DNA of 64,000 bases from IMGVR_UViG_3300037116_000299:1-64000, one strand, 5' to 3'; shown: positions 15,784 to 64,000, numbered from the stretch's first letter. The notes: generated by a model not told the origin, from the sequence alone. Made by a program: numbers and translations.

Positions 15784-16911
15784 CTACGCGGCCTTCTCTG
15801 AGATGACAACATGGCCCCGCAGATACTGCATGACCTCGTTGTACTGTTGGCGCGCCGTCTGGGTACTACACTGCAGCAGCGCCGCGACCTGGACCCAGTT
15901 GTACTCCTTGCAGTAGACCATCTGGAGGATCCAGCGCTCCTGCGGAGTCAGCGTGCGGAAGAGACGGTCATCGGTACTCTTGACCCAGGCGTCAGTCATG
16001 CGACTGATGTCCACCTGGGAGTGCATCAGGTCCGTGTCCGCCGCCCAGAGAACGCCGTTGGCATCACTGAAGTTGCCGTCTGCGCTAGGCAGCGCAGTGG
16101 CGTAGATGCGAGTATCGCCTGCAGCAGCTTCAGCGACTCCGCTCGGCCGATAATCGAGTTGCAGAAGGCCTGGCCGCGCTTCGAGTTCATTACGCCGAGC
16201 CTTGATGAACTCGATGAGATAGAACCGGAACTGGCGTTGCGCGTGATAAACAAACCCGATCGGCCCTGACTTGAAGAATGCCGGCTTGGGTGGCCACTCC
16301 GGCCCCCTCTTGTAACCGAGAACCTTCCGCCGCGGACCGTATACCGCGACCAGGTATCCCTTGCTAACCAGCAGCCGAACACACCTAACAGCATCAAAAT
16401 CCAGCTCTGCTGAGATAACTTCGGCTGTGAACTGCTTGTTCCCGAACTTCGCATCAACTACCTCGCATACCTGGCGCACCTTATCCGTGTACTTGGGGTC
16501 GTAATGGTGGCATGCCCGGAGAAAGCACATGACCATCACGTCGTACACTTCATCTGTCGACAATTGCTTGAACGCCAGGTGGAGGGAACGGCAGGCTTCT
16601 GAAAGCGTAGCCATATCATCGGTCTCGCCAGGGGCCAAGAGATTGCGCAGCATGTTCGCCGCATCCTTACCAGGACGCGAGCGCAGGCTGGGCAGCTGAC
16701 CACGAATCACCATGTTGGTGTACTTGATCAGGATCCCGTGGAAACACTGCACCAACGTCAGGAAGAGACCTTCTTTCTCAGGTCCGTCCGGCAGGTTGGC
16801 GTAGCGAATGGCGAGCAGATTGACAGCATCGCGATCGTGGAATTCGTCATCGGCAGGCACAGCCCATTTCGACGCGTAGTGGACCGACGACAGATTGTAA
16901 GAACGGGACAT
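15784..16911 (-). CDS. phage-type sigma-70-like factor with inserted winged-helix-like segment (alternative start 17175)
   Basis: Region 2-like 'DEVYDVMVMCFLRACHHYDP' and 'FVYHAQRQFRFYL'; region 4 'LTPQERWILQMVY..WVQVAALLQCSTQTARQ'; GAGG SD before ATG 16911. Confidence 0.7.
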   Translation of the reverse strand: MSRSYNLSSVHYASKWAVPADDEFHDRDAVNLLAIRYANLPDGPEKEGLFLTLVQCFHGILIKYTNMVIRGQLPSLRSRPGKDAANMLRNLLAPGETDDMATLSEACRSLHLAFKQLSTDEVYDVMVMCFLRACHHYDPKYTDKVRQVCEVVDAKFGNKQFTAEVISAELDFDAVRCVRLLVSKGYLVAVYGPRRKVLGYKRGPEWPPKPAFFKSGPIGFVYHAQRQFRFYLIEFIKARRNELEARPGLLQLDYRPSGVAEAAAGDTRIYATALPSADGNFSDANGVLWAADTDLMHSQVDISRMTDAWVKSTDDRLFRTLTPQERWILQMVYCKEYNWVQVAALLQCSTQTARQQYNEVMQYLRGHVVISEKAA

Positions 16912-16978
16912 CAGGATTCCTCTCGGTGTTTCGTGTCCCCACACGGAAGAGAGAGTTGTCCTGATAACTAACCGCTTG

Positions 16979-17182
16979 CTAGGCGGCTTTGCTGAGTACC
17001 TCAGCACGATCGGTGGCGGTGCGGCGACCTTCTTCACCATCGCTGGTGCGAACTGTTTCCGCCGGCATGGGCCAACGAGTAGTGCGGATTGGAGACGACA
17101 TCCCCTGCCGCGGACTGAGATAATCCTGAGCGAACGGGAAAGCGAGTTGTCTTGGATCAAGTGCTGCTGAGACATGTGTCAT
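16979..17182 (-). CDS. possible 67-aa protein (QLAFPF motif, ends KAA)
   Basis: Alternative reading to the N-terminal extension of the sigma ORF; ambiguous. Confidence 0.35.
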   Translation of the reverse strand: MTHVSAALDPRQLAFPFAQDYLSPRQGMSSPIRTTRWPMPAETVRTSDGEEGRRTATDRAEVLSKAA

Positions 17183-17191
17183 AACTCCTCC

Positions 17192-17222
17192 AGAATACGA
17201 AGCGTGATTGAAGTACCAAAGC
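17192..17222 (-). promoter_or_regulatory. putative promoter GCTTTGGTACTT-N12-G-TATTCT
   Basis: Intergenic, upstream of the sigma-like gene; same 12-mer and spacing as 10599-10629. Confidence 0.45.
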
Positions 17223-17782
17223 TACGCGGCAGCCGCCAGGACAGGACGTCTCGTGACCAATCTTTGAATCCAGGCCCTGAAGTCCTCATACGATGAGTCA
17301 CTCTTCGCCCTGTTACAGGTTTCGCAGCAGGTCACAACATTGCTGGATTCATAACCTTTCGAACTGTCGATCCGGTCGATCCCGTTGTAGGTGAAGGTTT
17401 CACCCTTATGGAGTCTGGTTGTGTGCGGCGAAAGATCACAGTAGTGGCAATCACCTTGGAACAGGTATTCCAACTCCTCGCGGGTCAACTCAAATGCCAA
17501 CCCTCTGCGCTTTGCATTGCTCCGGTAGTCAAGAATGATCCGCGTACACATGGCGTAACCAGCAGGTTTGTGTCCCATCTTCTGAATCTCACGGCCGTGT
17601 TCACGACGGGACTCAGTCCAGAGGCAACCGCAACTGTTGGTGCATTTGCCCAGATTCGACCGATACACAGAGGCTTCATTGCCGCAGTCACAATCGCAAA
17701 TCCAGTAGCCTTCTTTCTCCGAAGACCGTTCGCGAACGACAAGACGTCCGAATCGCTTGGTTGGGTACACTCTAGGCGACAT
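17222..17782 (-). CDS. HNH homing-type endonuclease
   Basis: RFGRLVV..WICDCDCG; CHYC..GIDRIDSSKGY..NVVTCCETCNRAK. Confidence 0.9.
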   Translation of the reverse strand: MSPRVYPTKRFGRLVVRERSSEKEGYWICDCDCGNEASVYRSNLGKCTNSCGCLWTESRREHGREIQKMGHKPAGYAMCTRIILDYRSNAKRRGLAFELTREELEYLFQGDCHYCDLSPHTTRLHKGETFTYNGIDRIDSSKGYESSNVVTCCETCNRAKSDSSYEDFRAWIQRLVTRRPVLAAAA

Positions 17783-21957: not shown

Positions 21958-22636
21958 GGAACACCTCCCGACAGGTCTTGAGAGCGCAGCGGTCGCAATG
22001 GTTGCCGGCCACCGGATACTTCGGCATCTCAACGGTCTTCAGTATTGCCGAGACCCACTTTGCTACCAAAGCCACGTCCACTTGTTTCCGTTCCCAGGCG
22101 GTCCCCTCCAACAGCGGCAGGTGATAAATCCCTACCTCGGTGGCAGTCGTAGACCGCATCACGTGGAGATATCGCAGCATCTCCAGGACGTCCGGGCACT
22201 GATGGAACTTCGGCCGACGGCTGTGCACCATCAGGAGCAGCGGCTTCTTGTACCCGGACCGGCTGCGGCCGCGGCGCTGGACCATGGCGTACTGGCCCAG
22301 GACCGTCTGACCGTCGATGAGCATCTCGTACGATGTCACTGGGATCAGAGGTTCGAAGAGCTGCAGGAACATGTAGATCCGCTTCGCCGCCGTGTTGCCA
22401 TTGCGCACGGCCTGGTAGAAGAGCGCGTCCTTGACCCCCGATGGATCCTGTTGCTGCCAGAACCACAGGAACTTCGAGCGCAGGTTAGGCACCGGCACAA
22501 GGCGGCCGTTGAAGGCCTCCAGGAGCGCCCACTGCATGAGCCTCTCGGCACAGGCAGCAGGGTCCCGCAGCGTGTCGACAGGGCTCAGCAATGGGCAGGT
22601 CAGATGGTCAGCCAGGACCTTCTCGGAGAGGGCCAT
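21950..22636 (-). CDS. degenerate Cas4/AddB-like PD-(D/E)XK-fold protein
   Basis: N-terminal TCP and C-terminal GNHCDRC..C; catalytic D..ExK not evident. Confidence 0.55.
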   Translation of the reverse strand: MALSEKVLADHLTCPLLSPVDTLRDPAACAERLMQWALLEAFNGRLVPVPNLRSKFLWFWQQQDPSGVKDALFYQAVRNGNTAAKRIYMFLQLFEPLIPVTSYEMLIDGQTVLGQYAMVQRRGRSRSGYKKPLLLMVHSRRPKFHQCPDVLEMLRYLHVMRSTTATEVGIYHLPLLEGTAWERKQVDVALVAKWVSAILKTVEMPKYPVAGNHCDRCALKTCREVFRG

Positions 22637-23229
22637 CAGGCGGCCGCTTGATCCAGGACAGGAACCCGGTAACTGCGGGCGGCGATCTCATCCAAGGTCG
22701 GAAGCACGGGTGCCCGTTCCTCGTACGACACCCTGAAGGCATTGGGGTGTACCGGCAGTTCGCGGGCAGTTCCCTTCCCGTCCGGAAGCGTCGCAGCTGC
22801 GATCGTGATGGCATGCTCCAGGTTGTCGACCGTCCAGCCGGCGCACTCCCGCACCATCGCATGGTTGTGCAGGTTGCCCTTTTCTATGATCAGGATGATG
22901 GGAATGTTGTTGGCATTGGCCCAGCCGATCTCAATCATGGTGCCGATCGAGACCCGTGTGGCCCCAAGCAGGTTCATGATGATCAGATCGGAACGGGTGC
23001 AGTCCATCCGGTCCCGCGTGGTGATGCCCTTGGCTGTGGTCAGAGGGTCATCTTCGTAGGTGTCCTCGATGATGCCGACCCTGGCGAGCCGAACATCCTT
23101 GGCGCGCAGAGGCGAGATCGCCTGGAACTCCTTCGGCAGGGCCTGGGCGACATACTCCCGCCAGTCCTGCCCTTGGTCATAGGTCAGGCCCGTAATCGGG
23201 CCCGCCAGGTAAACGAGAAAGTCGCGCAA
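22636..23229 (-). CDS. nucleoside 2-deoxyribosyltransferase / nucleotide N-hydrolase-like protein
   Basis: VYLAGPI..WRE..SPLR..RD..SD..SIGTMIEIGWA. Confidence 0.85.
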   Translation of the reverse strand: MRDFLVYLAGPITGLTYDQGQDWREYVAQALPKEFQAISPLRAKDVRLARVGIIEDTYEDDPLTTAKGITTRDRMDCTRSDLIIMNLLGATRVSIGTMIEIGWANANNIPIILIIEKGNLHNHAMVRECAGWTVDNLEHAITIAAATLPDGKGTARELPVHPNAFRVSYEERAPVLPTLDEIAARSYRVPVLDQAAA

Positions 23230-27994: not shown

Positions 27995-29272
27995 CTATGC
28001 TGCGGTTGGAAGAGCAGATTCGACCTGCTCCTCGCTGGCGAGATCCTCCGACTCGGCCGCGGCCGCTTCGTCAACCTCTTCGACACCAACCTCGACATCC
28101 TCGCCATCGATCAGGTTGACGATGTACTGCCAGGCAGCCTGGCCGTACGCCGAATCCCCTGTCAACAGCCGGTACGTCGCCAATTCACCCTGGCCCTTGA
28201 AGCTGGCATTCTTCTTCTTCTCCTCGATGTTCTTGCCTTCGCCGAGGATGTAATGCCAGCCGCCCTTCTGCACCGAAAGGATGCCCAGAGCGATTGCCTG
28301 GTTGAAGTAGGAGTAGGTCGTCGACATGCCTTCCCCGTTGATGTAATACAGGTCAACGAAGCGGCCCTTGTCGCCGATCTTGTTCTTGATGATCTTCACG
28401 CGGCAGATGAAGCCGTACGGCTTGCCGTCATCTCCACCCTCCTTCAGGGTCTTGATGTCGGACAGTTCCCAGCGCATCGTGGCGTAGAACGGCAGCGCCT
28501 TGCCTCCGCTGGTGACGTAGGTCGTGCCGCCGGATGGGTTGTAAGCGCCCACAGCCATGCGGGTTTGGTTGCACCACGCGCAGCACGCGCGGTAATTCTT
28601 GTTCTCACGGAAAAAGGCGCTGAGCTTCTTGGAGATGCCGCCAACCTGACGGTTGTCTTCCACTTCCTTGAGCGCATCGTCCTTTGAAGCGAGAGCATCG
28701 ATTGAATCAATGATCAGGAAGTCGAACACATTCATCGCCTTCTTCACGATTCCCAACACGTCGTCGCAGTAGAGGTCAATCTTCTCCGGCTCGTCGTCAT
28801 TGAAGCTGAAATGCGAACGCAACAGCCGCACGGGGTAAAGATTGTCGCCGCATTCGGCCGCGGTGGTCTTCAATCCGTTCAACGTCATGTACGCCGTCGT
28901 GATGGTCTGCTCGATGTCCGCGATGCCGACCCGGAAACCCAGCGATTGCAGGACCGCTGCAATCTTGAGCAACAGGGAAGTCTTGCCCGAACTCTCCTTC
29001 TTGGAGAAGACCTCTACGTGCCGGGCGCGCGGCATTCCGCTCTTACCCTGAGCAGCCAGCTGCTCATTGATGGCGGCGTCCAGATCGGGGAAGCCTGTGG
29101 TCATGCATTCAACGTCCATGCCAATCAGGTTCTCCGCCAGCTGTAGCGCGTCTGCCAGTCCGAGTCCTTCGAGTTCCTTCTCAAAGAGATCGTTCTTTGT
29201 CTTGGGGAGTTCCTCGACCTCTTCAGCCTTCGCTTTCCCCTTCTTCTTCGGTGCTGCCTTAGCTTTCGCCAT
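27995..29272 (-). CDS. recA: RecA/UvsX recombinase
   Basis: TTGFPDLD, KESSGKTS, IIDSIDAL, NQTR, TSGGKALPFYA, IIKNK. Confidence 0.9.
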   Translation of the reverse strand: MAKAKAAPKKKGKAKAEEVEELPKTKNDLFEKELEGLGLADALQLAENLIGMDVECMTTGFPDLDAAINEQLAAQGKSGMPRARHVEVFSKKESSGKTSLLLKIAAVLQSLGFRVGIADIEQTITTAYMTLNGLKTTAAECGDNLYPVRLLRSHFSFNDDEPEKIDLYCDDVLGIVKKAMNVFDFLIIDSIDALASKDDALKEVEDNRQVGGISKKLSAFFRENKNYRACCAWCNQTRMAVGAYNPSGGTTYVTSGGKALPFYATMRWELSDIKTLKEGGDDGKPYGFICRVKIIKNKIGDKGRFVDLYYINGEGMSTTYSYFNQAIALGILSVQKGGWHYILGEGKNIEEKKKNASFKGQGELATYRLLTGDSAYGQAAWQYIVNLIDGEDVEVGVEEVDEAAAAESEDLASEEQVESALPTAA

Positions 29273-31231: not shown

Positions 31232-31951
31232 TTATGCTGCGAGTGTTGCGATGATTGGTTTCTGGTAATGCGGGCAGTGACTTTCAAAGCCCGCGATTCT
31301 CATGCCCTCGATACGGGCGGCAATTCTGGGGAAGCCGTGGTCGATGTGGCCGGCGATGGGATACGACCCGTCGCAGGTCTGGAAGATCACAGAACCGTCC
31401 GGCTGCACCGCCAGGCGCAGTGGTCTGGTGTCCCAGTCACAGCGCTGACTGCAGGCGATCGGCCGACCCGCCAGGCGTCCCATGGGAAGGAACTCGGTCT
31501 CAGCTGCCTTGATCTCGAACTGTTCCGGGTAACGCTCGCAGAACTTGGCCAGGATCTCGGCGTTCTGGACCCGCTGATGAGCGGCCGTAGAACTGACGAA
31601 GACCTTGAATCCGAAGTGTTTGGCGTACCACTTCACGATGGTGGCGTCATGCTGGTCCCTCGACCAGTAGCCGTTCGAGATCATGAACTTGGGCTTGTCC
31701 TGTGGCAGCCAACCCATGATTCCGGCATTCTCGTTGAGGAACATCGTTGGTTCGCCGCCATAGAAGCCGAACGAATTGATGCGGTCCATCGGAATGGTTT
31801 GGATGAAGTCATAGAGCGCGCTCAGGCTCAAGCGATCTTTGACCTCGGGGCCGGAACTATACATGCAGAACGGGCAGCGCAGGTTGCACTCCCGCGAGTA
31901 CATGAAACTGAGATCGAAGAGATTGGAGGTTCCCTGTAGGTTCCAGACCAT
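31232..31951 (-). CDS. radical SAM protein
   Basis: CNLRCPFC, YGGEP, ISNGYW, GR..CSQRC..C. Confidence 0.9.
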   Translation of the reverse strand: MVWNLQGTSNLFDLSFMYSRECNLRCPFCMYSSGPEVKDRLSLSALYDFIQTIPMDRINSFGFYGGEPTMFLNENAGIMGWLPQDKPKFMISNGYWSRDQHDATIVKWYAKHFGFKVFVSSTAAHQRVQNAEILAKFCERYPEQFEIKAAETEFLPMGRLAGRPIACSQRCDWDTRPLRLAVQPDGSVIFQTCDGSYPIAGHIDHGFPRIAARIEGMRIAGFESHCPHYQKPIIATLAA

Positions 31952-32220: not shown

Positions 32221-34185
32221 TTATGCAGCGTCTGCCAGCTGCAGTTCTTCAGCCCGAGCGATCCAGTCCAACGGGCAGTAGTCGAAGTTGTCGACATGCA
32301 CCAGCGCCAGGTTGATCATCTTCTCCACTTCGCGAGTGTTCGGGACCACCACCTTGAAGGCGTGGTTCCAATCGTCCAGCTGAATGGTGAGGTCGAGCTT
32401 GCCGTCAAGCTTGCGGTCCTGGCGAGTCATCCTGCGATAGGCTGACACCAGGAGCTGCTCGATCTCAGCGCCGGTCCAGATCCTCTTCTTGTCGAAGAGA
32501 AGCTGACCCAGACCCTGTCCAGGCTTGTCCTTGGTGGCTTCCAGTTCCGGCGACAGAACCATCTTCTGTTTCCGAGTCTGGGCAGCCAGGATCGACCAGC
32601 GTCCCTTGTTGTCGCCCTTGACAGGCGGCAGCATGGGAATCTTGACGTCGATACGGCCAGCACGAATCAGGGCAGCGTCGAGCAGGTCAGGCCGGTTGCT
32701 GGCCATCAGGGCAACAACCTTGCCCTGGCGCCCAGGATCGGACAACCATGTCATCAAGTTGTTGAACATGCGGGCCGAGGTTCCGGAGTCGCCGCCGCCG
32801 GAGCGGCCGCTCGAAAGGACTGAGTCGACTTCGTCAAAGAACGCGATGCAGGGCGCCGCGGCTTCAATCGCCTCGATCAGCTTGCGCATGTTCTTCTCGG
32901 TCTCTCCAACAATGCCACCGAATACCTTCCCGAGATCGACCTGCAGGAAGTTGACACCAGCCTCGTAGGCCAGAGCCCAGGCGATCATGGTCTTGCCGGT
33001 GCCCGGAGGTCCGGTCATCAGGGCGCCGCGGGAGCAAAGCTTGCGGTTCCCTTCCTTGAGAGGCTTGATGATCTCCCAGCGACAGTAGTCCTTGAAGTGC
33101 TCGTGACCGCCGATCTGGTCGAAGCCGAAGGTGGGTTCCTTGATGTCCAGGATCCCGCCGTACTCGTCGTCCAGCGCCCGCTTCTTGCGTTCCTGCACCA
33201 TCGGGAAGTCCAGAGGGATGCGGGACCGCCAGGAGTTGAGGATCACGTCCTTGAGCTGCTTGCGATTCATGCCGGCCGACTGGTTGGCAAACTCGGCCAG
33301 GTTGAAGTCGGAAGCGAAGTCGATGCCGCGAACCTCGAGATTGTCCCCTACCTTCAGGGCCCCATCCAGCTCCACCTTGCGGAGGATCGACTGGTTGAAG
33401 TTGGTGATCCACTCAGTACGGTCCTGCAGATTCGGCTTGCGAACCACGTGACTGACTGCCAGCTCTCCGCGGATCGAGTCCTGAATGTCCGAGATGTGCC
33501 GGGTCATCAGGATGATCCGGTTCCGGGATCCAAGGACAGTGTCCTGGGCCCAGTTGCGGGCATTGATGATGGCCGCACGGTCCTGGACCAGGTTGGCGAT
33601 CTCGCCGCGCGGAAAGAGTGCGTCCGCGTCGGTGATGACCAGGGTCATGACCAGTTCCTTGCGTAAGGTTTGCTGCTGTGCCTTGCGGACCTCGTTGTCC
33701 ATCAGGATCTGCTTGGAGATCGAGAACCACTTGTTGAACAGCATCATGGCGGAGTCAGGGCTGCCGGGGTGGAAGTAGTCTTCTCCCATCTCGTTGATCG
33801 CCTCATCGCCCATGATCTGCTTGAAGGCGTCCTTGAACATCTCGTAGCTGCGGGTGTCCGGAAACTCCAGGCCCTGCGAGGTGTTGTAGAACGCCATGAC
33901 TCGGACCTTCTCCGAGACTCGGGCGTTGGTCTGCTGGACGCCGATCTCCTGGCTGTCGGGGCGCGCGTCCGGGTTCAGGCCGCGCTGGATGTTGTCATCG
34001 AAGTTGCAGGCCAGAACCTTCTTGATGCCAAGATTGCTGCCGGCGTTATCGACGAAGTCGTAGATGTTGCCGTACAGGAGGAACAGGTGCGAGATCTGCG
34101 CCTGATAGTCATCCTTGATAGCGCGGATGAAGTCAGGTTCGCCGCGCTGGATCACTCGGGTCGGTCGTGTCGTTCTGGGTGGCAT
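32221..34185 (-). CDS. AAA+ ATPase (Ycf46/CDC48-like; degenerate N-terminal + active C-terminal AAA module)
   Basis: FDQIGG, GPPGTGKT, GIVGETEKN, FFDEVD, ASNRPDLLDAALIRAGRID. Confidence 0.92.
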   Translation of the reverse strand: MPPRTTRPTRVIQRGEPDFIRAIKDDYQAQISHLFLLYGNIYDFVDNAGSNLGIKKVLACNFDDNIQRGLNPDARPDSQEIGVQQTNARVSEKVRVMAFYNTSQGLEFPDTRSYEMFKDAFKQIMGDEAINEMGEDYFHPGSPDSAMMLFNKWFSISKQILMDNEVRKAQQQTLRKELVMTLVITDADALFPRGEIANLVQDRAAIINARNWAQDTVLGSRNRIILMTRHISDIQDSIRGELAVSHVVRKPNLQDRTEWITNFNQSILRKVELDGALKVGDNLEVRGIDFASDFNLAEFANQSAGMNRKQLKDVILNSWRSRIPLDFPMVQERKKRALDDEYGGILDIKEPTFGFDQIGGHEHFKDYCRWEIIKPLKEGNRKLCSRGALMTGPPGTGKTMIAWALAYEAGVNFLQVDLGKVFGGIVGETEKNMRKLIEAIEAAAPCIAFFDEVDSVLSSGRSGGGDSGTSARMFNNLMTWLSDPGRQGKVVALMASNRPDLLDAALIRAGRIDVKIPMLPPVKGDNKGRWSILAAQTRKQKMVLSPELEATKDKPGQGLGQLLFDKKRIWTGAEIEQLLVSAYRRMTRQDRKLDGKLDLTIQLDDWNHAFKVVVPNTREVEKMINLALVHVDNFDYCPLDWIARAEELQLADAA

Positions 34186-34429: not shown

Positions 34430-34431
34430 GG

Positions 34432-34662
34432 CTACTCCTTTGCGGTGATGCTTTCGGAGCGAACCTTGGACGCAGTCAGCGTTCCAATCGAAACGCCCAG
34501 GGCCAGATGGTCGATCGCTTTGCCGCGGAGCTGCTTGCGCAGCAGTTTGCCTGCATCCTCGGCATTGTCGGCGACCATCTTCTTCTTTAGCCGGAAGGTG
34601 CCGGTCACCTGACCGGACACCTCGACTGTGAACTCGTGAAACCTATGCTGCTTCTTGGACAC
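34432..34662 (-). CDS. small basic hypothetical protein
   Basis: GTG with GGAGG SD; C-terminal part of track ORF 34432..35187. Confidence 0.55.
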   Translation of the reverse strand: MSKKQHRFHEFTVEVSGQVTGTFRLKKKMVADNAEDAGKLLRKQLRGKAIDHLALGVSIGTLTASKVRSESITAKE

Positions 34663-35909: not shown

Positions 35910-35925
35910 CGGTTGTTCCCTTTCC

Positions 35926-43973: not shown

Positions 43974-44152
43974 GACGGGCGCACCTGGGTCTCCAGGCGT
44001 TCCGCCACGGCGATTGCAGCGTCATCGTCCGGGGAGAGAATAGCCAGAGCATCGGCGACCAAGTCGGCCGTCTTCTTGTTCATGATGAGAGTGGTTACCT
44101 CTCCCATCTCGACCACGCTCCACTGGAACTTCTTGTGCGATTCCACATTCAT
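43970..44152 (-). CDS. small hypothetical protein
   Basis: ATGA overlaps at both ends. Confidence 0.6.
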   Translation of the reverse strand: MNVESHKKFQWSVVEMGEVTTLIMNKKTADLVADALAILSPDDDAAIAVAERLETQVRPS

Positions 44153-44370
44153 GCGGCTACCTGCTCTCGCAACAGCGGAGCAATCTCGGTGGTCGAGACT
44201 GGGTTCTCCGACGAGCCGTCCCAGACATGGACACGAAGTTTGCCTTCGTAGACCTCGATGTAGATCTGGGAGGGGAAGTTGGGATCCGTATCTGGAGAGT
44301 CCCTGAATCCGCGGACTCCTATCTCCAGACCTTCAGGGCCGGTTCCAAGGGTGTCTAATTCAATGCGCAT
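44149..44370 (-). CDS. small hypothetical protein (IYIEVYEGKLRVHVWD)
   Basis: AAGGAGG SD. Confidence 0.65.
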   Translation of the reverse strand: MRIELDTLGTGPEGLEIGVRGFRDSPDTDPNFPSQIYIEVYEGKLRVHVWDGSSENPVSTTEIAPLLREQVAA

Positions 44371-44372
44371 CG

Positions 44373-45797
44373 TTAGGCAGCCTCCTTGAGCTGCTGGCTT
44401 TCGACGGCCAGGCGTTCTGCACGCATGGCTGCGATCTGTGCTCCGAATGCCGACATGACATGCTCGATCTCTTCGGGCCGGCGCACCGGGGCGTACAGCT
44501 CCTTCGGCTTCGGAAACTGCTGTGCATCAGAGCTGAAGCGTCCGGTCGCGATCGTGGCCTTGTCTTCCCCGCCACTCTTGCGTCCTTCTTCTTCCCCTGA
44601 GCCCAGCTGCTTGAAGCGAGGGTGCCACTTGCCGGTGTGCTGGTTGATCTTGTCGACCATGTTGGTGCCGTAGGTCGAGGTCATCTTGGTGACGTTCGAG
44701 AACTCGGCCATCAGCTTGCACATCTCGCGCTGTTCCGGAGAGAAGTCCTTGCCCTTGACCTTGTTCTTGGTGACGTCCTTGAGGGTGTCGCGGCGAATGT
44801 CATCGAGATTGATATCGATCTCGCGCAAAGCGGCCAGCTTCTCGGCGTTCGACTTGAGGTTGAATACCGAGTCCAGTCCGGGGATCAACGATCCAACCAG
44901 ACTTCCCTGCTGCTTCTTCATCGCCGTGAACAGCTTGAAGATCTTCTCGCCGAGGTCGGACTCATGCTGCGTCCAATACTCGATGATCTGGCGCATGATC
45001 GGCACGCTCAGGTTGACGCCGTGGATCTCCATCTCCGCGGTGGGGAAGATGACATCGAACTCATCCCTGGCAGTGTCCAGAAGCTGCCACTGTTTCAGCA
45101 GCTTAGACTGGTCCTGCATCAGCGGGAACATCAGCACGATATCCCGGGCAGAGTAGTACGCCATGCTGCGCGTCAGCTTCCTCCGCTCGTCATCGAGACC
45201 GATGAACATGTCGCGTACGGCCTTGTTGATCAACCAGTAAGGCTCATGCCGGCGAACGCAGTCCGCCAGGCCTACCTTCATGGCCAGAAGCCCGGCAACC
45301 AGGATCTGTTCGGCGAGCATGGAGCAGTAAACCCGCTGCATGTGGACGCCGTACTTGACCAGGAGCCACTTGAAGTCATAGATCGCGTTGTGCAGCAGGT
45401 GTAGGAACTTGTCCGACTCCAGCCACGCTTTGAACTCGACCACCAGGTCGGGATCGATCAGATAGACCTGGTCCTCGTTGCCGATCTGGAACAACACCAT
45501 CCGGGTATCCGGATTGACCGGGTTCATCGAATAGCCCTTGTCGCCCTTGACGGTGCGGCCGGTGGTCTCGGTGTCGATTCCATGGATCCGGATGCGGTCC
45601 AGGAACTCTTTAATTGGGGCCAGGTCTCCAGTCGAGGTGACCTGGATGACCTGGTTTTGATCCCAGGCCCCAGGTTCCCACGCACTTTGCAGCCAATCCG
45701 GCCGGCCAACGATGCGATAGTTCACTGGAACGTGCATCTCCAGTGGAGTACACACCGGACCACGGGAGTGACCGCTACTGCGTCCTCTAGGTGCCAT
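44373..45797 (-). CDS. polA: DNA polymerase A, N-terminal subunit (3'-5' exonuclease + thumb)
   Basis: Exo I IDTETTG, Exo II HNAIYD, Exo III YSARD; EMEIHGV; FNLKS; TYG; HPRFKQ; ATGRFSS..QQFP. Confidence 0.92.
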   Translation of the reverse strand: MAPRGRSSGHSRGPVCTPLEMHVPVNYRIVGRPDWLQSAWEPGAWDQNQVIQVTSTGDLAPIKEFLDRIRIHGIDTETTGRTVKGDKGYSMNPVNPDTRMVLFQIGNEDQVYLIDPDLVVEFKAWLESDKFLHLLHNAIYDFKWLLVKYGVHMQRVYCSMLAEQILVAGLLAMKVGLADCVRRHEPYWLINKAVRDMFIGLDDERRKLTRSMAYYSARDIVLMFPLMQDQSKLLKQWQLLDTARDEFDVIFPTAEMEIHGVNLSVPIMRQIIEYWTQHESDLGEKIFKLFTAMKKQQGSLVGSLIPGLDSVFNLKSNAEKLAALREIDINLDDIRRDTLKDVTKNKVKGKDFSPEQREMCKLMAEFSNVTKMTSTYGTNMVDKINQHTGKWHPRFKQLGSGEEEGRKSGGEDKATIATGRFSSDAQQFPKPKELYAPVRRPEEIEHVMSAFGAQIAAMRAERLAVESQQLKEAA

Positions 45798-46564
45798 TAC
45801 GCCGCCTTTACTGCCTGGTCCCTGACAAGATACGGGAGAGGCGAACTGACTGTTGGTTCGGAGATGCGACGAAGAACTTCCTCCTCGATCGTCGAGGCAA
45901 GTCCTTCCTTGGTTGAAGATTCGTAGATGTCCAGCACAAAGGTGCGGGGCAGAGGTTTCAGATACTTCAGGTAGGCATTCTGGATCGTCCGCTGAGGCTC
46001 AACGTCGTTCCAGGTCTTGCCGTCCTGCTTGCCGGCCTCGCCGCCGCGCCGGGCATTGGCCCGCGCCAGAGCCCAGGAGATATCTTCCTCACGGTGCATG
46101 CCGCGGGTAGGCGGCGGATAAGGAACGAAGATGTGAGGGCCGCGCGCCACCATCAGAATGGTCAGGTCCGGGATGATGCCAAAGTTCAAGGCATAGGTAT
46201 CCATCGTCCACTCAGGAGCCTTGCGGGCGGCCGCGGCGCCGTACGCAAACTGAGAGTCTGCATACCGGTCGCTGATAACCACCTTGCCTGCTTCAACCGC
46301 ATTGGCGATGTCGCCTGCATTCTGAATGTGGTCAGCCAGAAACAGCATGTCCGCAACGCCAGGATGCATTGCATGGGTCGTAGGGTCCGTAAACAGAAGT
46401 GAACGCACCCCACTGCCGATCAACGAGCCCGACCGCGCATCGCCCGGTTCCTTGGTGTTGACCACGATGTAATCCCGAGCCTGCAGGGTCTGGGTCAGCA
46501 GTCCTACCTGCGTGGACTTGCCTACTCCATCGATGCTTTCGAAGGAAATGAATAAGCCTCTCAA
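45797..46564 (-). CDS. tmk: thymidylate kinase
   Basis: FISFESIDGVGKSTQ, TKEPG, ISDRYADSQFAYG, PDLT. Confidence 0.9.
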   Translation of the reverse strand: MRGLFISFESIDGVGKSTQVGLLTQTLQARDYIVVNTKEPGDARSGSLIGSGVRSLLFTDPTTHAMHPGVADMLFLADHIQNAGDIANAVEAGKVVISDRYADSQFAYGAAAARKAPEWTMDTYALNFGIIPDLTILMVARGPHIFVPYPPPTRGMHREEDISWALARANARRGGEAGKQDGKTWNDVEPQRTIQNAYLKYLKPLPRTFVLDIYESSTKEGLASTIEEEVLRRISEPTVSSPLPYLVRDQAVKAA

Positions 46565-53410: not shown

Positions 53411-53797
53411 CTAACCCTCCGTCCCCGTAAGAGCCATTGCAACTCCCGCGGCCGCCTTGATGGCATGCCGCTTGCGGAAATGGAGTGGGGACTTCTGCTC
53501 AACCCGCCGCAGTTCGCGCTGGGTTTCCTCGTCGAAGTCCAGATCACAGGTGTCACAGAGAGCAAGGAGCGTAACCCCAATGCCTCCCATTTCCTGATAC
53601 ACCATGCCAACCGGCCGGCTGTAGACACGCTCGACCAACTTCAAAGCATCGTCCTTGGTCACTTCCAAGGCCTGGTTCAGCTCAAGTGTCTCTTCGAGGA
53701 ACCGTTTGGCGCGTTCCTGGCGCGAGTAATATACCGAAGCACCGAAGCAGTTGATGACCCAGTGACGAATTCGAGTCGTCAGTCCTGTCAAATCCAT
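53411..53797 (-). CDS. MazG-like nucleotide pyrophosphohydrolase
   Basis: W..FG..ERAKRFLEETLEL..QEMGG..TL; TAATG coupling. Confidence 0.7.
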   Translation of the reverse strand: MDLTGLTTRIRHWVINCFGASVYYSRQERAKRFLEETLELNQALEVTKDDALKLVERVYSRPVGMVYQEMGGIGVTLLALCDTCDLDFDEETQRELRRVEQKSPLHFRKRHAIKAAAGVAMALTGTEG

Positions 53798-54846
53798 TAC
53801 GCGGCACTCCTTTGGCTCCGGATCCCCTGGACCCGGTTGCATATCTTATGAACGGAGGCGACCGCGGCCGACAGCTGCAGGCCCGTCTCCGGGGTATTGT
53901 GATCGGTCAGTTCATGAATGAACTCGGCCAGCAGGTCCGCGCGAGACGGCGGACAGTTGGCTTCCAGCAGCTTCTTGCGGAAGAACCCGCTCAGAATGAT
54001 CCGGATATCCGCACCATCCCGCGGCTCAGCGCCCTCGAGCAACTCGCGCGCCTCAAACCAGTTGCCCTGGATCACGGCGCCGCACAGCTTGCCGACGTTG
54101 ATCTTGCCGGAGATCGTAGGAATGACGGCCGACTCTTCCGGGGTCATGCCTTTGGCCAGGTTCTCCACGGCCGTGACGATGTCGCCTGGCGCGTTGATAC
54201 CGCGACCGATGAGCAGCGCTTCGAGCTGGGCCAGGTCGGTATCTTTCCAGCCGCCTTGGGGCTCGGCGTGCGGCACGACCTTGACGATCAGGTCCTTGAC
54301 CTCCCAGGGCATCAGGCCTCCCAGGACATAGCGGGCAGACATGCACCGCTTCATCAACTCGGCGCGCAGCTTGGTTGGATCGCTGGTACAGAACATGAAG
54401 AGGTTGTTGCCGTCCGGACTCTCCACCGGCTTGAGCAGGACGCTCTGGGCGGCCGTGTGCATCGCCTGGCACTCATCGAAGATGAGCGAGCGGAAAGAGC
54501 CGTACGCCGGCGCGTAAGGAAGAATCGCCAGCATGTCCCGGATCTCATCCGCTGATCCTTCTGCGGCACAGTTGCGATCCAGGATCTCCATGTCCGCTTC
54601 GTGGGCCAGGCAGTCGTCGCAGGGCTCCCCAAAGGGAGCATGCTGACAGTTGACCGAGACCGCAATGATCTTTGCCAACGTGGTCTTGCCCCCGCGGGAC
54701 ATGCCCTCAAAGAGCATCGCCGTGGGCACACGACCGGAGGAGAACTGATTGCGCAACTGGTGGATGACGTTCTCGTAACCGACCACTTCGCTGAAGCGGC
54801 GGGGGCGAAGGGCAGCACTGAGATTGCGTGTGATTTCCTGGATCAT
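53797..54846 (-). CDS. dnaX: clamp loader large subunit (DnaX gamma/tau-like)
   Basis: LRPRRFSEVVG, GGKTTLAKI, NC..PCDDC, FDECQ, LLKPVE, KRC. Confidence 0.88.
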   Translation of the reverse strand: MIQEITRNLSAALRPRRFSEVVGYENVIHQLRNQFSSGRVPTAMLFEGMSRGGKTTLAKIIAVSVNCQHAPFGEPCDDCLAHEADMEILDRNCAAEGSADEIRDMLAILPYAPAYGSFRSLIFDECQAMHTAAQSVLLKPVESPDGNNLFMFCTSDPTKLRAELMKRCMSARYVLGGLMPWEVKDLIVKVVPHAEPQGGWKDTDLAQLEALLIGRGINAPGDIVTAVENLAKGMTPEESAVIPTISGKINVGKLCGAVIQGNWFEARELLEGAEPRDGADIRIILSGFFRKKLLEANCPPSRADLLAEFIHELTDHNTPETGLQLSAAVASVHKICNRVQGIRSQRSAA

Positions 54847-59537: not shown

Positions 59538-60380
59538 TTAGGCTGCCTTCTGTTCGACCAGGCGCTGTTCTGCTTCGGGCGTAACCTGAGCATTGCGGCG
59601 TTTCTTCGAGCAGGCGGCACAGAGGGGAACCCCGTACTGAGCCTGGCTGCGCAGGAATACGTCCCAGAAGTGGAGCGAACGCTTGTTGTGCTGCGCGTCC
59701 TCGTATTCCACCGTCACGATCGGATCGGTGCACTCCGAGCAGTCCTTGGCCGGGTACGCCCAGTCAGGAATCTGAGGCTGATCGGTCCAGCACTTCTTGA
59801 TGGAGTTGTACTTGCACTCCTGGGTGGGAAATGCGTACAAATACCGGCCTGGACCCCATTTGGACATCGCGCGCTTGTAGGCCTGCGCCTCTGCCGTGGT
59901 GATCCAGTTGCCGTCGGCCGTATCCTTGGCGCCGGTCGAATCATGCCAGACCCAGCCGAGGACCGGACCCATCCAGATACCGACTCGAACTACGAGTCCA
60001 ACCTGGTAGGCGTTGACTTCCTTCGCCGGTTCCAGAACCCGGGCATTGCCCTGCTCGTCCTTGTTCTGCCAGTCCAGCCGGGCCTTGGCCAGTTTGGTGT
60101 AGGGCGCGATGTCGACGCGAACCACTTCGGACTGCCAGAAGCCTGGTCCGATGACGGCATCCATGCGTTCGGTGTAAACGCGCGAATCCGCATAGGCGGC
60201 CGCGGTAGCGACGCCGCTCTTGATGGTCTGCGGCAGGAAGTAGATGTCCTCGGGATTGAAAGGTTCTGCCAGGCTTCGCAGCGTTGCCTTGAAGTCCACG
60301 TGGTAGGCCGGGAGCGTGGCGCCCGGGAAAGCGAGTATAACCGGCGGCGCGGCCGCGGCTGTGGTGGGTTTGGTTGCCAT
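59538..60380 (-). CDS. Rad52/Sak-like single-strand annealing protein with C-terminal Zn finger
   Basis: LAEPF, AYADSR..ERMDAV.G..W, AYKRAMSKWGPGRYLY; CSEC..CAAC. Confidence 0.85.
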   Translation of the reverse strand: MATKPTTAAAAPPVILAFPGATLPAYHVDFKATLRSLAEPFNPEDIYFLPQTIKSGVATAAAYADSRVYTERMDAVIGPGFWQSEVVRVDIAPYTKLAKARLDWQNKDEQGNARVLEPAKEVNAYQVGLVVRVGIWMGPVLGWVWHDSTGAKDTADGNWITTAEAQAYKRAMSKWGPGRYLYAFPTQECKYNSIKKCWTDQPQIPDWAYPAKDCSECTDPIVTVEYEDAQHNKRSLHFWDVFLRSQAQYGVPLCAACSKKRRNAQVTPEAEQRLVEQKAA

Positions 60381-61257: not shown

Positions 61258-61264
61258 GGGGCTC

Positions 61265-63562
61265 CTATGCAGCCTTAGGCAGGTTCGCCTCGGCCTTCAC
61301 TTCCTTGCGGATGCGATGGGCCAGGAATGTGAAACGCTGGTTGACGTCACACTGTTCGACCGCGAGCTTCACCGCATTCCAGGCGGCAATGAACACGATC
61401 ATCTTCTTGGCACGGGTATTCGCCGTGTAGAGGAGATTTCTCTGCAACATGGGGAAGTGGTGATTCGTCATAATGCAAATGACAAAACTGAACTCGGAGC
61501 CTTGACTCTTGTGCACCGTGGCCGCGTAAGCAAGGACCAGATCATCGGTCTCTGCATACGGATAGCGCACGATCTTGCCATAGAAGTCGATCTGGATCTC
61601 TTTGTTGATCTCATCGAACTCCTTGATGAAACCAATGTCGCCGTTGAAGATCTCCAACTTGTAATCGTTGGACAACTGCATGACGCGATCGCCAATGCGG
61701 AACTTCTGAGCCCGGATCGCAACTTCCTTGCCGTCGGGATTGAGTGTGGCCTGCAGCACGGTGTTGAAGACGGGGAAGCCAGCAGGTCCCTTGCGCATCG
61801 GCATCAGTACCTGGAGATCCCGTACCGGATCGATTCCATGCTTGACGACGATCCGATTGATCACCGCCGGCAGCATCTTCTTGATCCACTCCAGGTCGTC
61901 TTTGCCTTTGCCCTCACCTTCCGTAGCCTTCGGTACCTCCATGAAGTAGGAATCCGCTTCGATGTTGCGGCCCTTCTTCACGTCGGGGAAGATCGGCATC
62001 TGGCCGGTCCGGATCTTATGAGCGTTCCGGATGATCAGCGAGTTCTCCGCCTGGCGGAAGATCGTCTCCAGCTTGGTCACGTGGACCCGGTTGGAGTTGA
62101 TCAGGTCCCGCAGGACCATGCCAGGGCCGACTGAAGGCAGTTGGTCGATATCACCGACAAAGACTACCGAGCAGGCGTCCGAGACAGCATCCATCAGGGA
62201 GTCCGCCAGCTGAATGTCCAGCATGGAGGCTTCGTCCACAACCAACAGGTCGCAGTGGAGCGGATTGCTGCGATCCCGCAGGAAGTCGCCCATCTCCGGA
62301 TCCCATTCCAGCAGCTTGTGGATGGTCTGGGCTTCCTGTTCGGTCACCTCGGACATCCGCTTGGCCGCGCGGCCGGTAGGCGCGCACAGCTCCACCCTCA
62401 GACCCAGGCGAGCGGCGGTGCGCAGGAGCATCTTCAGCGTCGTGGTCTTGCCGGTTCCAGGACCTCCCGTCAGAATCGACAGGTTGTTCAGGAGGGCGGC
62501 GATGACCGCATCCCGCTGCTGTTCATTGGGGATTTGACCCAGGTCGGCTTCAACACGCTCCAGGGTCTCCTCGATGCCCCGAGGGGCAACGTGCAGGAAA
62601 CTCTGCAGCTCGCCAATGCGGCGGGCCAGACGTACCTCCGCCTCATGAATGTGAGGCAGATAGTAGAAGACCCAGGGCTTTCCATTGACCTGAATCTCTT
62701 CCTTCATCAAACGCTTGCGATCGACAGACCGGGTAATGGCGGCAATCGCCTCCAACTCCGGCAACTGCATCTCCTCGTCCTCGGTAACGCCGCGCCGGCT
62801 GCTGGCAATCTTGCGGACTGCCGTAATCAGGTCCGCGGCGGGAAGGAAGCAGTGACCGTGACCGGTACCTTCGGTCACCACATGGGTCACAGCTGCCTCC
62901 GTACGCTCCGGACAACGCTCAGGCCATCCCATGCGCTTGGCGAGGTCGTCGGCCTTCCTGAAGCCAATCCCGTCCACGGCCATGGCCTTGTACGGGTTCT
63001 TCTGGAGGGTCTCGGTGACCTTGTTGCCGAAGATGGCGATAAACCGCTTGGCCCATACATCGCCGATGCCGAACTGCGCCAGCCACAGACCCACCTGCCG
63101 AAGCAACGGATCGTGGTTCTCCAGCCAGGAGGCAGCAATCTTGTCGGCCTTTGCCTGGGTGATCCCCGGACATTCCGCCAACCGCATCGGCTGCTTGTCC
63201 AGGATCTCGATGATGTCGTGGCCGAAGTGAGCAGTCAGTTGTGCCGCTGTCTTCGGACCCACACCCTCGACCCAGCGTTCGAGAAAGCGTTGCTTGCCGA
63301 CCAGGCTGGTCGGGATTAGCTTCACGGCCTGGGACGCAACGAAGGTTGCGCCGTACTTCGGATCGTCCACGACTTTGCCGTAGAACTCGAACAGATCCTC
63401 TGGATCCCAGTCTGGAATCTCTCCTTTGACGGAGAGGTCGGGTCCTGGCTGTTCTGGATGAACACTCACGATCCGGAAGATGTTGCCTTCGGAGCTGGTG
63501 CCCTGGCGCGGATAGCGCTGCCACATGATGTTGCCCCGGAACTTCTGCAGATCGTCTTCCAC
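61265..63562 (-). CDS. recD2: RecD2-type SF1B helicase
   Basis: YG..F; HhH GVGPKTA and GIGFRKAD; GGPGTGKTT; APTGRAAKR; VDEASM; GDIDQLPSVG; IFRQ; TVHKSQGSE; YTANTRA. Confidence 0.95.
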   Translation of the reverse strand: MEDDLQKFRGNIMWQRYPRQGTSSEGNIFRIVSVHPEQPGPDLSVKGEIPDWDPEDLFEFYGKVVDDPKYGATFVASQAVKLIPTSLVGKQRFLERWVEGVGPKTAAQLTAHFGHDIIEILDKQPMRLAECPGITQAKADKIAASWLENHDPLLRQVGLWLAQFGIGDVWAKRFIAIFGNKVTETLQKNPYKAMAVDGIGFRKADDLAKRMGWPERCPERTEAAVTHVVTEGTGHGHCFLPAADLITAVRKIASSRRGVTEDEEMQLPELEAIAAITRSVDRKRLMKEEIQVNGKPWVFYYLPHIHEAEVRLARRIGELQSFLHVAPRGIEETLERVEADLGQIPNEQQRDAVIAALLNNLSILTGGPGTGKTTTLKMLLRTAARLGLRVELCAPTGRAAKRMSEVTEQEAQTIHKLLEWDPEMGDFLRDRSNPLHCDLLVVDEASMLDIQLADSLMDAVSDACSVVFVGDIDQLPSVGPGMVLRDLINSNRVHVTKLETIFRQAENSLIIRNAHKIRTGQMPIFPDVKKGRNIEADSYFMEVPKATEGEGKGKDDLEWIKKMLPAVINRIVVKHGIDPVRDLQVLMPMRKGPAGFPVFNTVLQATLNPDGKEVAIRAQKFRIGDRVMQLSNDYKLEIFNGDIGFIKEFDEINKEIQIDFYGKIVRYPYAETDDLVLAYAATVHKSQGSEFSFVICIMTNHHFPMLQRNLLYTANTRAKKMIVFIAAWNAVKLAVEQCDVNQRFTFLAHRIRKEVKAEANLPKAA

Positions 63563-63655
63563 TGATACCCCTGAACCTGACTAACAGTCAGTATGTCTTG
63601 CGGACGGTTATTTCCCTATAAGGGGAACTGCCTATATCCGTGTGAAATGCTGGTT

Positions 63656-64000
63656 CTATGCTGCTTTAGTGGTAGCGATCACACGCCCATGGCGCCGGAT
63701 CGGCGTAACCACAGCGAACTCGAGATCGAGCTGGCCTTCAGAGAAACTCTTGATGGGCACGGCACTGATCAGGTTCGCTTCACAGATCTGTTCGAGATCG
63801 ATGATCAACTTACCGGACAGGCCCCAGTCCAACTCGACCGTGAACAGTTCCTCGGCATCGAATTGCTCCCGCAGCTGGGCTCTTCCCAGCCGGATCGCGT
63901 CGGTTACAAGATCCGCACCGACACTAAAGTGCAGTTCAAGACCGGTCTTAGTCCGGTCGCCCAGACGAAACGTATATCGGTTCATACTGTCCTTTCCCAA
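63656..64000 (-). CDS. hypothetical protein (start near the window edge)
   Basis: Reading frame reaches the window end; QLDLEF; ends KAA. Confidence 0.6.
   Translation of the reverse strand: MGKDSMNRYTFRLGDRTKTGLELHFSVGADLVTDAIRLGRAQLREQFDAEELFTVELDWGLSGKLIIDLEQICEANLISAVPIKSFSEGQLDLEFAVVTPIRRHGRVIATTKAA

Follow-up and report, generated by a model that had tools for sequence, protein, structure and literature searches.

About one in five non-virion proteins of a 214-kb prophage, inferred to reside in a peat Acidobacteriaceae bacterium, ends in Ala-Ala (AA), which is the core of the bacterial ssrA/ClpXP degradation signal. These tails are clearly maintained by selection at the protein level, and it is inferred that the phage probably builds much of its early proteome to be short-lived. 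The stretch analyzed first (hereinafter referred to as the window) comprised 64,000 nucleotides (IMGVR_UViG_3300037116_000299:1-64000), and the analysis was extended to the whole 214,300-bp record.

Frequency and distribution of Ala-Ala ends

The first-pass annotation had listed 14 AA-ended minus-strand proteins between 15784 and 64000, and this observation was confirmed in full and proved larger than reported. All 14 proteins ended in AA with the tails given. With a codon-likelihood gene caller, 68 minus-strand genes were found in that span, of which 14 ended in AA and 10 more in xA, whereas 0.7 of 68 would be expected from the internal AA dipeptide frequency (1.07%). Non-gene ORFs ended in GCN-GCN-stop in 1.1% of cases (23 of 2090). 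None of the 17 genes called in 1-14.6 kb ended in AA; this contrast region (1..14431) is a mixed-strand accessory/defence-like arm with a T5orf172-ResIII helicase, an Eco57I/MmeI-type methyltransferase, an MBL-fold protein, and an ATP-grasp protein. The first-pass count of about 10 further xA ends was correct, but it was not an enrichment, since xA-only ends accounted for 9.9% genome-wide, about what composition predicts. Ax-only ends were also at expectation, and only the AA dipeptide was enriched.

Over the whole record, 37 of 292 proteins ended in AA directly before TAA, TAG, or TGA. Of these, 34 were among the 179 genes of the minus-strand non-virion block at 14.7-127.8 kb (19%, about 18 times the internal rate, binomial p 9e-32), and 3 were among the 83 genes (3.6%) of the plus-strand virion block at 128-210 kb (Fisher p 5e-4), which holds portal, major head protein, sheath, and baseplate genes. 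In three Acidobacteriaceae genomes of like GC content, 19 of 963 proteins (2.0%) ended in AA (odds ratio 11.7, p 2e-16). Equal AA frequencies in host and virion genes had been named in advance as an outcome that would refute the idea, and the idea was not refuted by these comparisons.

The enrichment was not attributable to a nucleotide-level effect. All four Ala codons (GCA 12, GCC 11, GCT 7, and GCG 7 at -2) and all three stop codons were used. Although 79 of 179 genes in the block overlapped or abutted the next gene (4 nt or less), the AA fraction was 19.0% (15 of 79), 24% (6 of 25), and 19.1% (13 of 68) for junctions of 4 nt or less, 5-20 nt, and more than 20 nt, respectively. Some tails contained GAGG or AAGG just before the Ala codons, but SD-like motifs were no commoner in AA tails (12 of 34) than overall (56 of 179).

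Proteins carrying the tails, their conservation, and the inferred host

Pfam searches confirmed 11 of the functional labels of the first-pass annotation. The 14 tailed proteins of the window, all encoded on the minus strand, included a sigma-70 region-4 protein (15784..16911; ...EKAA, stop TAG, 292 nt to the next gene), a nucleoside 2-deoxyribosyltransferase (NDT; 22636..23229; ...QAAA), and a protein of unknown function (17222..17668; ...AAAA), for which the ORF may start at 17782 and the earlier label HNH was not confirmed, as no Pfam hit was obtained. A phage RecA-like recombinase (27995..29272) carried ...PTAA at the end of a roughly 32-residue acidic tail predicted as disordered. Further, a radical SAM protein (31232..31951; ...TLAA), a Cdc48/VCP-like AAA ATPase (32221..34155; ...ADAA), and an RNase_T/DnaQ-like exonuclease (34643..35257; ...QEAA) were identified. 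A 73-aa protein of unknown function (44149..44370; ...QVAA) was followed, in coordinate order, by the N-terminal piece of a split family-A DNA polymerase, consisting of the 3'-5' exonuclease plus the start of the polymerase (44373..45725; ...KEAA), and by thymidylate kinase (Tmk; 45797..46564; ...VKAA, 71 nt to the next gene). The remaining proteins were a clamp-loader protein (pol III delta'/DnaX-like, 53797..54846; ...RSAA), a Rad52/Sak single-strand annealing protein (59538..60380; ...QKAA), a RecD2 helicase (61265..63562; ...LPKAA), and a protein of about 110 aa of unknown function (63656..63985; ...TKAA).

In two relatives at about 54% identity (L009 and L016), AA was kept in 10 of 11 cases, and the AA status of orthologues was concordant (10 AA/AA, 38 non/non, 2 discordant; p 1e-8), although positions -10 to -3 were only 16% identical and no conserved motif existed beyond the two alanines. 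Orthologues in L009 ended ...LVAA (radical SAM), ...AEAA (AAA ATPase), and ...VQAA (exonuclease), and those in L016 ended ...QRAA (clamp loader) and ...QQAA (Sak). In contrast, the related phages L010, L012, and L013 lacked AA on the same orthologues, including the AAA ATPase, and L013 (GC 0.60) showed no enrichment. Seven relatives of RecD2 at 64-68% identity ended LPxAA, whereas 1 of 104 cellular-type homologues ended in AA. For the RecA-like protein, 7 of 14 close family members and 9 of 39 family representatives ended in AA, against 3 of 110 generic RecA hits.

AlphaFold2 models were obtained for two of the 37 proteins, and in both the tail was predicted to be disordered: residues 759-765 of RecD2 and 394-425 of the RecA-like protein had pLDDT below 50 in models with mean pLDDT of 89 and 87, respectively. 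At position -3, the residues reported to disable AA degrons in E. coli (P, H, G, and short polar ones; PMC10862746) occurred in 5 of 37 tails against a background of 35-38% (p 0.001 and 0.008). Positions -4 and -5, however, were often Q, E, or P rather than the Leu, Ala, Arg, or aromatic residues favored further upstream, and these rules come from E. coli, not from the inferred host.

The element is a prophage, classed in IMG/VR as a provirus (99% complete), so that the carrier state invoked by the first-pass annotation is real. A tyrosine integrase (PF00589) lies at L008:6504-7661 next to an attachment tRNA, with host DNA beyond it, and the tRNA-Arg(CCG) was 100% identical to that of Granulicella, Edaphobacter, and Tunturiibacter. 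The tRNA and the roughly 550 bp downstream of it (654 aligned bases in all) were 89% identical to a Granulicella MAG. The host assignment is inferred from this single tRNA and short flank, and no related prophage was found in 401 Acidobacteriaceae genomes. In all five Acidobacteriaceae genomes searched, the tmRNA tag was AEPQFALAA, and ClpX (about 612-617 bits) and ClpP were present, with clpP next to clpX in four. The ssrA-binding loops of ClpX (GYVG, GGRKHP, and the pore-2 loop) were conserved. The phage itself carries a tmRNA with a tag ending ...YLAAA, but no ClpP or PDZ protein was found in it, so that any protease or C-terminus reader would have to be that of the host.

Possible role of the tails

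The first-pass annotation had proposed that the element tags its replication/recombination machinery for coordinated turnover, as a developmental switch or to limit toxicity in a carrier state, and this interpretation was only partly supported. The match to the ssrA/ClpX degron core held, but the emphasis on replication was too narrow. The tails also sit on the sigma factor, peptide deformylase, RNase H, RNA ligase, Tmk, NDT, the radical SAM enzyme, and about 15 small unknown proteins, whereas core replication proteins (primase-helicase, the C-terminal part of PolA, beta clamp, ligase, SSB, UDG, and RNR) lack them. Destabilization by the tails and coordinated, timer-like turnover remain inferences, and because the strictly lytic phage phiCbK shows the same bias, lysogen safety cannot be the whole story.

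The best explanation, held with no more than moderate confidence, is that the AA ends are genetically encoded mimics of the last two residues of the host ssrA tag (a C-motif-1 ClpX degron). In this view, each tail would sit at an exposed, unstructured C-terminus, and the host ClpX hexamer would grip the Ala-Ala-COO- end with its RKH, pore-1, and pore-2 loops, unfold the protein, and feed it to ClpP, possibly with a contribution of ClpAP or FtsH. About a fifth of the non-virion proteins would be intrinsically short-lived and the virion proteins lacking the tail stable, with the variable upstream residues (often K, V, A, L, or E at -3) setting individual half-lives. Enzyme and regulator levels would then follow transcription closely, early and middle functions would disappear once their genes are shut off, and products of leaky prophage expression would be cleared. 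The enrichment, its restriction to non-virion genes (apart from the 3 of 83 above), protein-level selection, conservation in orthologues, and the presence of the ssrA tag and clpP-clpX in the host lineage were established here from sequence; tail disorder is a prediction for the two modelled proteins; and recognition by ClpXP, actual instability, its abolition by an AA-to-DD change, and the purpose of the tails are inferred.

Terminal AA has been found in 91% of the 100 strongest C-terminal pentapeptide degrons, all ClpXP-dependent, but AA alone was not sufficient in that E. coli screen, in which 39% of xxxAA tags were weak (PMC10862746). Host proteins were not depleted of AA ends (2.0% against 1.4% internal), so a terminal AA is not strongly counter-selected in this lineage. 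Phages of hosts with equally good AA recognition (T4, Bxz1, and RSL1) showed no enrichment; together with L010, L012, and L013, this indicates that host recognition alone does not predict the trait. It is also odd that essential enzymes such as RecA, the clamp loader, and Tmk would be made unstable.

A less likely possibility is that the tails are recognized by ClpXP but serve to flood it. A burst of many AA-ended early proteins would out-compete host substrates and stabilize labile antitoxins, blocking abortive-infection toxin-antitoxin systems, or other ClpXP-controlled host or phage proteins, and the phage tmRNA would add to the load. The evidence on recognition applies equally here, many different proteins (37) carry the tail, and the densest cluster (10 of 29) lies among small proteins at 110-121 kb, close to the divergent start of the block at about 128 kb. 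Phages inhibit host proteases to defeat toxin-antitoxin defence, as T4 PinA and T7 gp4.5 do with Lon. However, a decoy needs only one or a few abundant proteins, whereas the tail is kept individually on the same orthologues across relatives while neighboring genes never acquire it, which points to a per-protein benefit. In addition, larger enzymes carried the tail more often (20 of 70 at 150 aa or more) than small proteins (14 of 109 below that).

Even more doubtful is a different reader of the C-terminus, with AA-COOH acting as a docking or sorting motif for a phage hub protein, a chaperone, or a compartment or replication-factory targeting system, or as a protective cap against a host exopeptidase or a C-degron pathway. 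The conservation and predicted exposure of the tails, the lack of depletion in host proteins (which fits a signal harmless by itself), and the patchiness among related phages (as expected for a phage-encoded partner) are compatible with this. No candidate reader was found in the phage, however, and the Cdc48-like AAA ATPase is also present in relatives without AA tails (L010 and L013). The same bias in unrelated phages makes a shared phage-encoded partner unlikely, and the absence of a conserved motif beyond the two alanines suits ClpX better than a specific docking site. Finally, a by-product of efficient termination, of the ribosome-binding site of the next gene, or of compositional or mutational bias is very unlikely and largely refuted by the junction, codon, and non-gene ORF data, by the low frequencies in the equally compact virion block and in a host lineage of the same GC content, and by the absence of enrichment in the high-GC phages RSL1 and Bxz1 and in L013.

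Comparison with known systems

No published description of such a bias was found, but with the same gene caller AA was the commonest terminal dipeptide in the Caulobacter phages phiCbK (26 of 306; 5.9 times expectation, p 8e-13) and CcrColossus (27 of 446; 4.5 times, p 2e-10) and in Sinorhizobium phage phiM12 (10 of 351; 4.1 times, p 2e-4). phiCbK also carries a permuted tmRNA whose tag ends ...AIAA. These are unrelated lytic phages of Alphaproteobacteria, and the bias is two to four times weaker. In the Caulobacter phages a single terminal Ala is also enriched, and in phiCbK the contrast between virion and non-virion genes was not significant (3 of 65 against 23 of 241) and position -3 showed no avoidance pattern.

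Other phage early or regulatory proteins are made unstable through host AAA+ proteases to time development or the lysis-lysogeny choice, including lambda O and Mu transposase/repressor (ClpXP) and lambda cII, N, and Xis (FtsH or Lon). Those are one-off cases with diverse degrons (N-terminal for lambda O, RRKKAI-type for MuA), for which a proteome-wide uniform C-terminal tag is not known to have been described.

Compared with the ssrA tag (...ALAA-COOH), the phage tails share the terminal Ala-Ala with a free carboxylate on an end predicted to be unstructured in the two modelled proteins. They are, however, encoded in the gene rather than added by trans-translation, only the last two residues are shared (Leu at -3 in 3 of 37 tails), and no SspB-binding part exists. 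Naturally encoded AA-COOH also makes single cellular regulators ClpXP substrates, as in Caulobacter CtrA. Streptomyces sigma-AntA is degraded by ClpXP through its encoded AA, is stabilized by changing AA to DD, and keeps AA in 67 of 71 orthologues (PMC7142297). The phage sigma-like protein ends EKAA, but whereas those are individual regulators, about 19% of a viral non-virion proteome, mostly enzymes, carries the tail here.

Genome context and verification of the Ala-Ala ends

The virus record, of which the window forms the first 64 kb, is 214,300 bp long with a GC content of 58.9%, and is classed by IMG/VR as a provirus with 99% completeness. At its right end (L008:6504-7807 and beyond, in segment L008 of the record; genome 210.5-212.4 kb), a tyrosine integrase (PF00589) was found next to a tRNA-Arg(CCG) that is 100% identical to the tRNA of many Acidobacteriaceae, including Granulicella, Edaphobacter, Tunturiibacter and Silvibacterium. 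The tRNA and the roughly 550 bp beyond it (654 aligned bases in all) were 89% identical to a Granulicella MAG. Near-identical sequence occurred in many peat and permafrost metagenomes. The element is therefore a temperate jumbo myovirus of roughly 210 kb with a peat Acidobacteriaceae host, although the host assignment is an inference from one tRNA and a short flank, and a search with the portal protein found no related prophage in 401 Acidobacteriaceae genomes.

The genome comprised a mixed-strand accessory arm at 1-14.6 kb, a long minus-strand block at 14.7-127.8 kb with genes for replication, nucleotide metabolism and translation-related functions and many unknown genes, and a plus-strand block at 128-210 kb with portal, major head protein, tail sheath and baseplate. 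The arm (window 1-14431) encoded a T5orf172-ResIII helicase (847 aa), an Eco57I-type methyltransferase (559 aa), an MmeI-Mtase-like protein, an MBL-fold protein and an R2K ATP-grasp protein, and looks like a defence or accessory island inside the provirus record. The family-A DNA polymerase was split (window 42412-43353 and 44373-45725, minus strand): the exonuclease plus N-terminal polymerase part and the C-terminal polymerase part (Pfam positions 142-361) were separate genes with four small genes between them, and only the N-terminal piece ended in Ala-Ala (AA). A dense set of translation and RNA-repair genes was found at genome 66-100 kb (segments L001 and L002 of the record), including peptide deformylase, PTH2 peptidyl-tRNA hydrolase, a T4-type RNA ligase, a PNKP-like kinase-phosphatase, a CCA-adding/poly(A) polymerase family enzyme, a SpoU methylase and 7 tRNAs, together with a REC-LuxR response regulator beside the tmRNA and a D123-family protein. 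One Rfam tRNA hit in this region (L002:4313-4435) was 123 nt long and may contain an intron. Further, two large ORFs at L001:12530-16331 (minus strand; genome 76.5-80.3 kb), of 387 aa with a weak T4SS-pilin hit and of 637 aa encoding a TPR-repeat protein, had codon usage so atypical that they were skipped by the gene caller, and may be a recent acquisition.

Genes were called with a codon-likelihood caller written for this analysis, which yielded 292 genes covering 87% of the record. A C-terminus depends only on which stop-delimited ORFs are real, not on the choice of start codon, and ORFs of 100 aa or more that the caller missed did not end in AA. The first-pass annotation had named 14 minus-strand proteins ending in AA between 15784 and 64000, and this observation held: all 14 were present with the tails it had given. 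Pfam confirmed 11 of its functional labels, whereas the label 'HNH' was not confirmed. The span contained 68 minus-strand genes, of which 14 ended in AA and 10 in xA.

Over the whole record, 37 of 292 called genes ended in AA. Of the 179 genes in the minus-strand non-virion block, 34 did so (19.0%, p 9e-32 against 1.07% internal AA), compared with 3 of 83 in the virion block (Fisher p 5e-4 against the non-virion block), 0 of 17 in the left arm (1-14.6 kb) and 23 of 2090 (1.1%) among ORFs not called as genes. In a first pass with 282 genes, Ala accounted for 23% of residues at position -1 and 21% at -2, but for 7-12% at -3 to -10. Only the dipeptide was enriched, since xA-only ends (9.9%) and Ax-only ends (8.2%) were both at expectation. 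AA ends occurred along the whole block, peaked at 110-121 kb (10 of 29), and were commoner in proteins of 150 aa or more (20 of 70) than in smaller ones (14 of 109).

The two Ala codons used all four wobble bases, and the stop codons were TAG (13), TGA (13) and TAA (11). The AA fraction was 15 of 79 for gene junctions of 4 nt or less, 6 of 25 for 5-20 nt and 13 of 68 for more than 20 nt, and SD-like tetramers occurred in the last four codons of 12 of 34 AA genes against 56 of 179 overall. An effect of the junction or of the SD of the next gene, which had been a concern in the first-pass annotation, is therefore excluded for the set as a whole.

Controls in other genomes and conservation among relatives

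The same caller was applied to other genomes, a comparison that had been proposed in part beforehand as a test of the degron idea. In three Acidobacteriaceae genomes (3 x 400 kb, GC 0.58-0.63), 19 of 963 genes ended in AA (2.0%; internal AA 1.4%). Against this host-lineage sample the non-virion block had an odds ratio of 11.7 (p 2e-16), whereas the virion block did not differ. Among published phages, AA ends were found in 2 of 323 genes (0.6%) of Ralstonia RSL1 (GC 0.58), 4 of 226 (1.8%) of Mycobacterium Bxz1 (GC 0.65), which carries a tmRNA, 1 of 275 of T4, 0 of 260 of Sphingomonas PAU, and 7 of 374 of Pseudomonas Lu11 (2.1 times expectation, p 0.05). In contrast, they were found in 26 of 306 genes of Caulobacter phiCbK (JX100813; 8.5%, 5.9 times expectation, p 8e-13), 27 of 446 of Caulobacter CcrColossus (JX100810; 6.1%, 4.5 times, p 2e-10) and 10 of 351 of Sinorhizobium phiM12 (KF381361; 2.8%, 4.1 times, p 2e-4). 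AA was the most frequent C-terminal dipeptide in these three cultured phages of Alphaproteobacteria, and in the Caulobacter phages a single terminal Ala was also enriched (23-24% at -1). The AA-tailed proteins of phiCbK included an exonuclease (gp121) and a ligase (gp151). Together with the 1.1% among uncalled ORFs and the absence of AA ends (0 of 24) in the metagenomic relative L013 (GC 0.60), these data rule out GC or Ala composition as the cause. The trait is likewise not a general phage property or a simple correlate of carrying a tmRNA. It recurred, more weakly, in unrelated phages of Alphaproteobacteria, and the present prophage was the strongest and cleanest case among the nine phage genomes examined (this prophage and eight published phages).

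DNA and protein searches of the public phage collection found no close relative, but relatives were present in metagenomes. Two syntenic loci, L009 (RecA 71% identical) and L016 (RecD2 67% identical, on a 3.26-Mb metagenomic contig), had 6 of 34 and 6 of 35 AA ends, respectively. Across these two loci the AA status of orthologues was almost perfectly concordant, with 10 AA/AA, 38 non/non, and 1 and 1 discordant (Fisher p 1e-8). In the ten AA/AA pairs, positions -10 to -3 were 16% identical against 54% for the whole proteins, which is purifying selection on the two alanines themselves. More distant metagenomic relatives, namely L010 (GC 0.34), L012 and L013, lacked AA on the same orthologues, and L014 had 4 of 17 AA ends, partly on other proteins. 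RecD2 relatives at 64-68% identity ended LPxAA, while cellular-type homologues ended in AA in 1 of 104 cases. In the phage RecA-like family, 9 of 39 representatives ended in AA after highly variable acidic tails, against 3 of 110 among weaker, generic RecA hits. A homologue search with the deformylase gave only 2 hits, too few to serve as a control. Contigs from four peat or permafrost runs aligned to 6 kb holding eight AA tails showed only 6 SNPs, none in a tail, which is uninformative on variation at the Ala codons. In addition, the L016 relative carried PRTRC_E, Prok_Ub and Prok-E2_D genes, a ubiquitin-like conjugation cassette, upstream of its SSB (L016:573-3279).

Candidate readers of the C-terminus

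No ClpP, PDZ protein or SmpB was found to be encoded by the phage. A Cdc48/VCP-like AAA ATPase lay close to a DUF1257 gene (window 32221-37653, minus strand), in a cluster that in relatives also held a DUF2997 gene and a radical SAM/Fer4_12 gene and that was conserved across all relatives examined, including AT-rich ones. As this ATPase was also present in relatives without AA tails, it is not the reader.

All five host-lineage genomes searched had a one-piece tmRNA with the tag AEPQFALAA, the last four residues of which are those of the E. coli tag. In these genomes clpP was next to clpX in four of the five. Their ClpX aligned end to end with solved ClpX structures and kept the GYVG pore-1 loop, the GGRKHP (RKH) loop and the pore-2 loop, the elements that contact the ssrA C-terminus (PMC7652416). 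The phage itself encoded a permuted (two-piece) tmRNA outside the window (L001:11193-11494, minus strand; genome 75193-75494; Rfam RF04321, 68.7 bits), which was also called by ARAGORN and whose predicted tag ends ...EAAYLAAA. Because the host lineage has an ordinary one-piece tmRNA, the phage gene is not a recent copy of the host's. Phage-borne two-piece tmRNAs are known, mostly from aquatic phages (PMC9004378).

AlphaFold2 models built from alignments placed the AA tails of the two proteins modelled, RecD2 (residues 759-765) and the RecA-like protein (394-425), in segments with pLDDT below 50, outside well-predicted folds. Position -3 of the 37 tails was K in 10, A in 5, V in 5, L in 3 and E in 3, with other residues in the remainder. 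Only 5 of 37 fell in the set of Pro, His, Gly and short polar residues, against a background of 35-38% (p 0.001 and 0.008). This set is the class reported to disable AA-ended tags in E. coli, and in the same E. coli screen terminal AA occurred in 91% of the 100 strongest C-terminal degrons and depended on ClpXP (PMC10862746).

Interpretation and comparison with known systems

The best-supported reading is that the tails are built-in ssrA-like degrons, which would make roughly a fifth of the non-virion proteins clients of host ClpXP. We consider this about as likely as not. The enrichment and the selection on the two alanines were established from sequence, whereas recognition by ClpXP and instability of the tailed proteins are inferred. 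AA alone is not always sufficient in E. coli, host proteins were not depleted of AA ends, and several phages of hosts with the same recognition system do not use it. The interpretation in the first-pass annotation, that the element tags its replication/recombination machinery for coordinated turnover, was only partly supported, being too narrow: the sigma-like protein, deformylase, RNase H, RNA ligase, Tmk, NDT, a radical SAM enzyme and many small unknown proteins also carried the tail, whereas primase-helicase, the PolA C-terminal part, clamp, ligase, SSB, UDG and RNR did not.

The purpose of the tails is less certain. Timed erasure of early and middle functions, clearance of leaky prophage products, and saturation of ClpXP are candidates. 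The presence of the bias in lytic phiCbK argues that lysogen safety is not the only driver, and per-orthologue conservation favours a per-protein benefit over a pure decoy. A phage-encoded protease or C-terminus reader, gene-caller bias, composition and a junction effect were rejected on the evidence described.

A broader reading, which is not excluded but which we regard as doubtful, is that several unrelated phage lineages, namely this Acidobacteriaceae jumbo prophage and its relatives, the Caulobacter phiCbK-like phages and Sinorhizobium phiM12, have independently converted a large share of their non-virion proteomes into ssrA mimics. In this view, host ClpXP would serve as a global post-translational clock that erases the early programme, possibly together with phage-encoded tmRNAs whose tags also end in AA, and would constitute a genome-scale layer of viral temporal control that has gone unnoticed and can be read directly from sequence.

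If the tails are working degrons, protein half-life is written into about a fifth of the early and middle genes of this phage with a two-residue code, a proteome-wide, post-translational layer of viral gene regulation on top of transcriptional timing. The last two codons would then help to separate non-virion from virion genes and would flag likely ClpXP clients in uncultivated phages. The idea also bears on why some phages carry tmRNA genes and on how large prophages keep dozens of potentially toxic DNA enzymes harmless in lysogens, and natural tails with graded upstream contexts would be a ready-made library of tunable degrons. It can be tested at once, because phiCbK, which shows the same bias, infects Caulobacter, a leading model for ClpXP proteolysis.

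Literature searches found no report of a viral proteome that uses AA tails systematically, although this is absence of evidence only. The degron type itself is well known, as are single phage or cellular proteins that use it; here, about 19% of a viral non-virion proteome carries the tail. A cellular precedent for an encoded AA degron on a sigma factor is Streptomyces sigma-AntA, which is degraded by ClpXP and stabilised when AA is changed to DD (PMC7142297).
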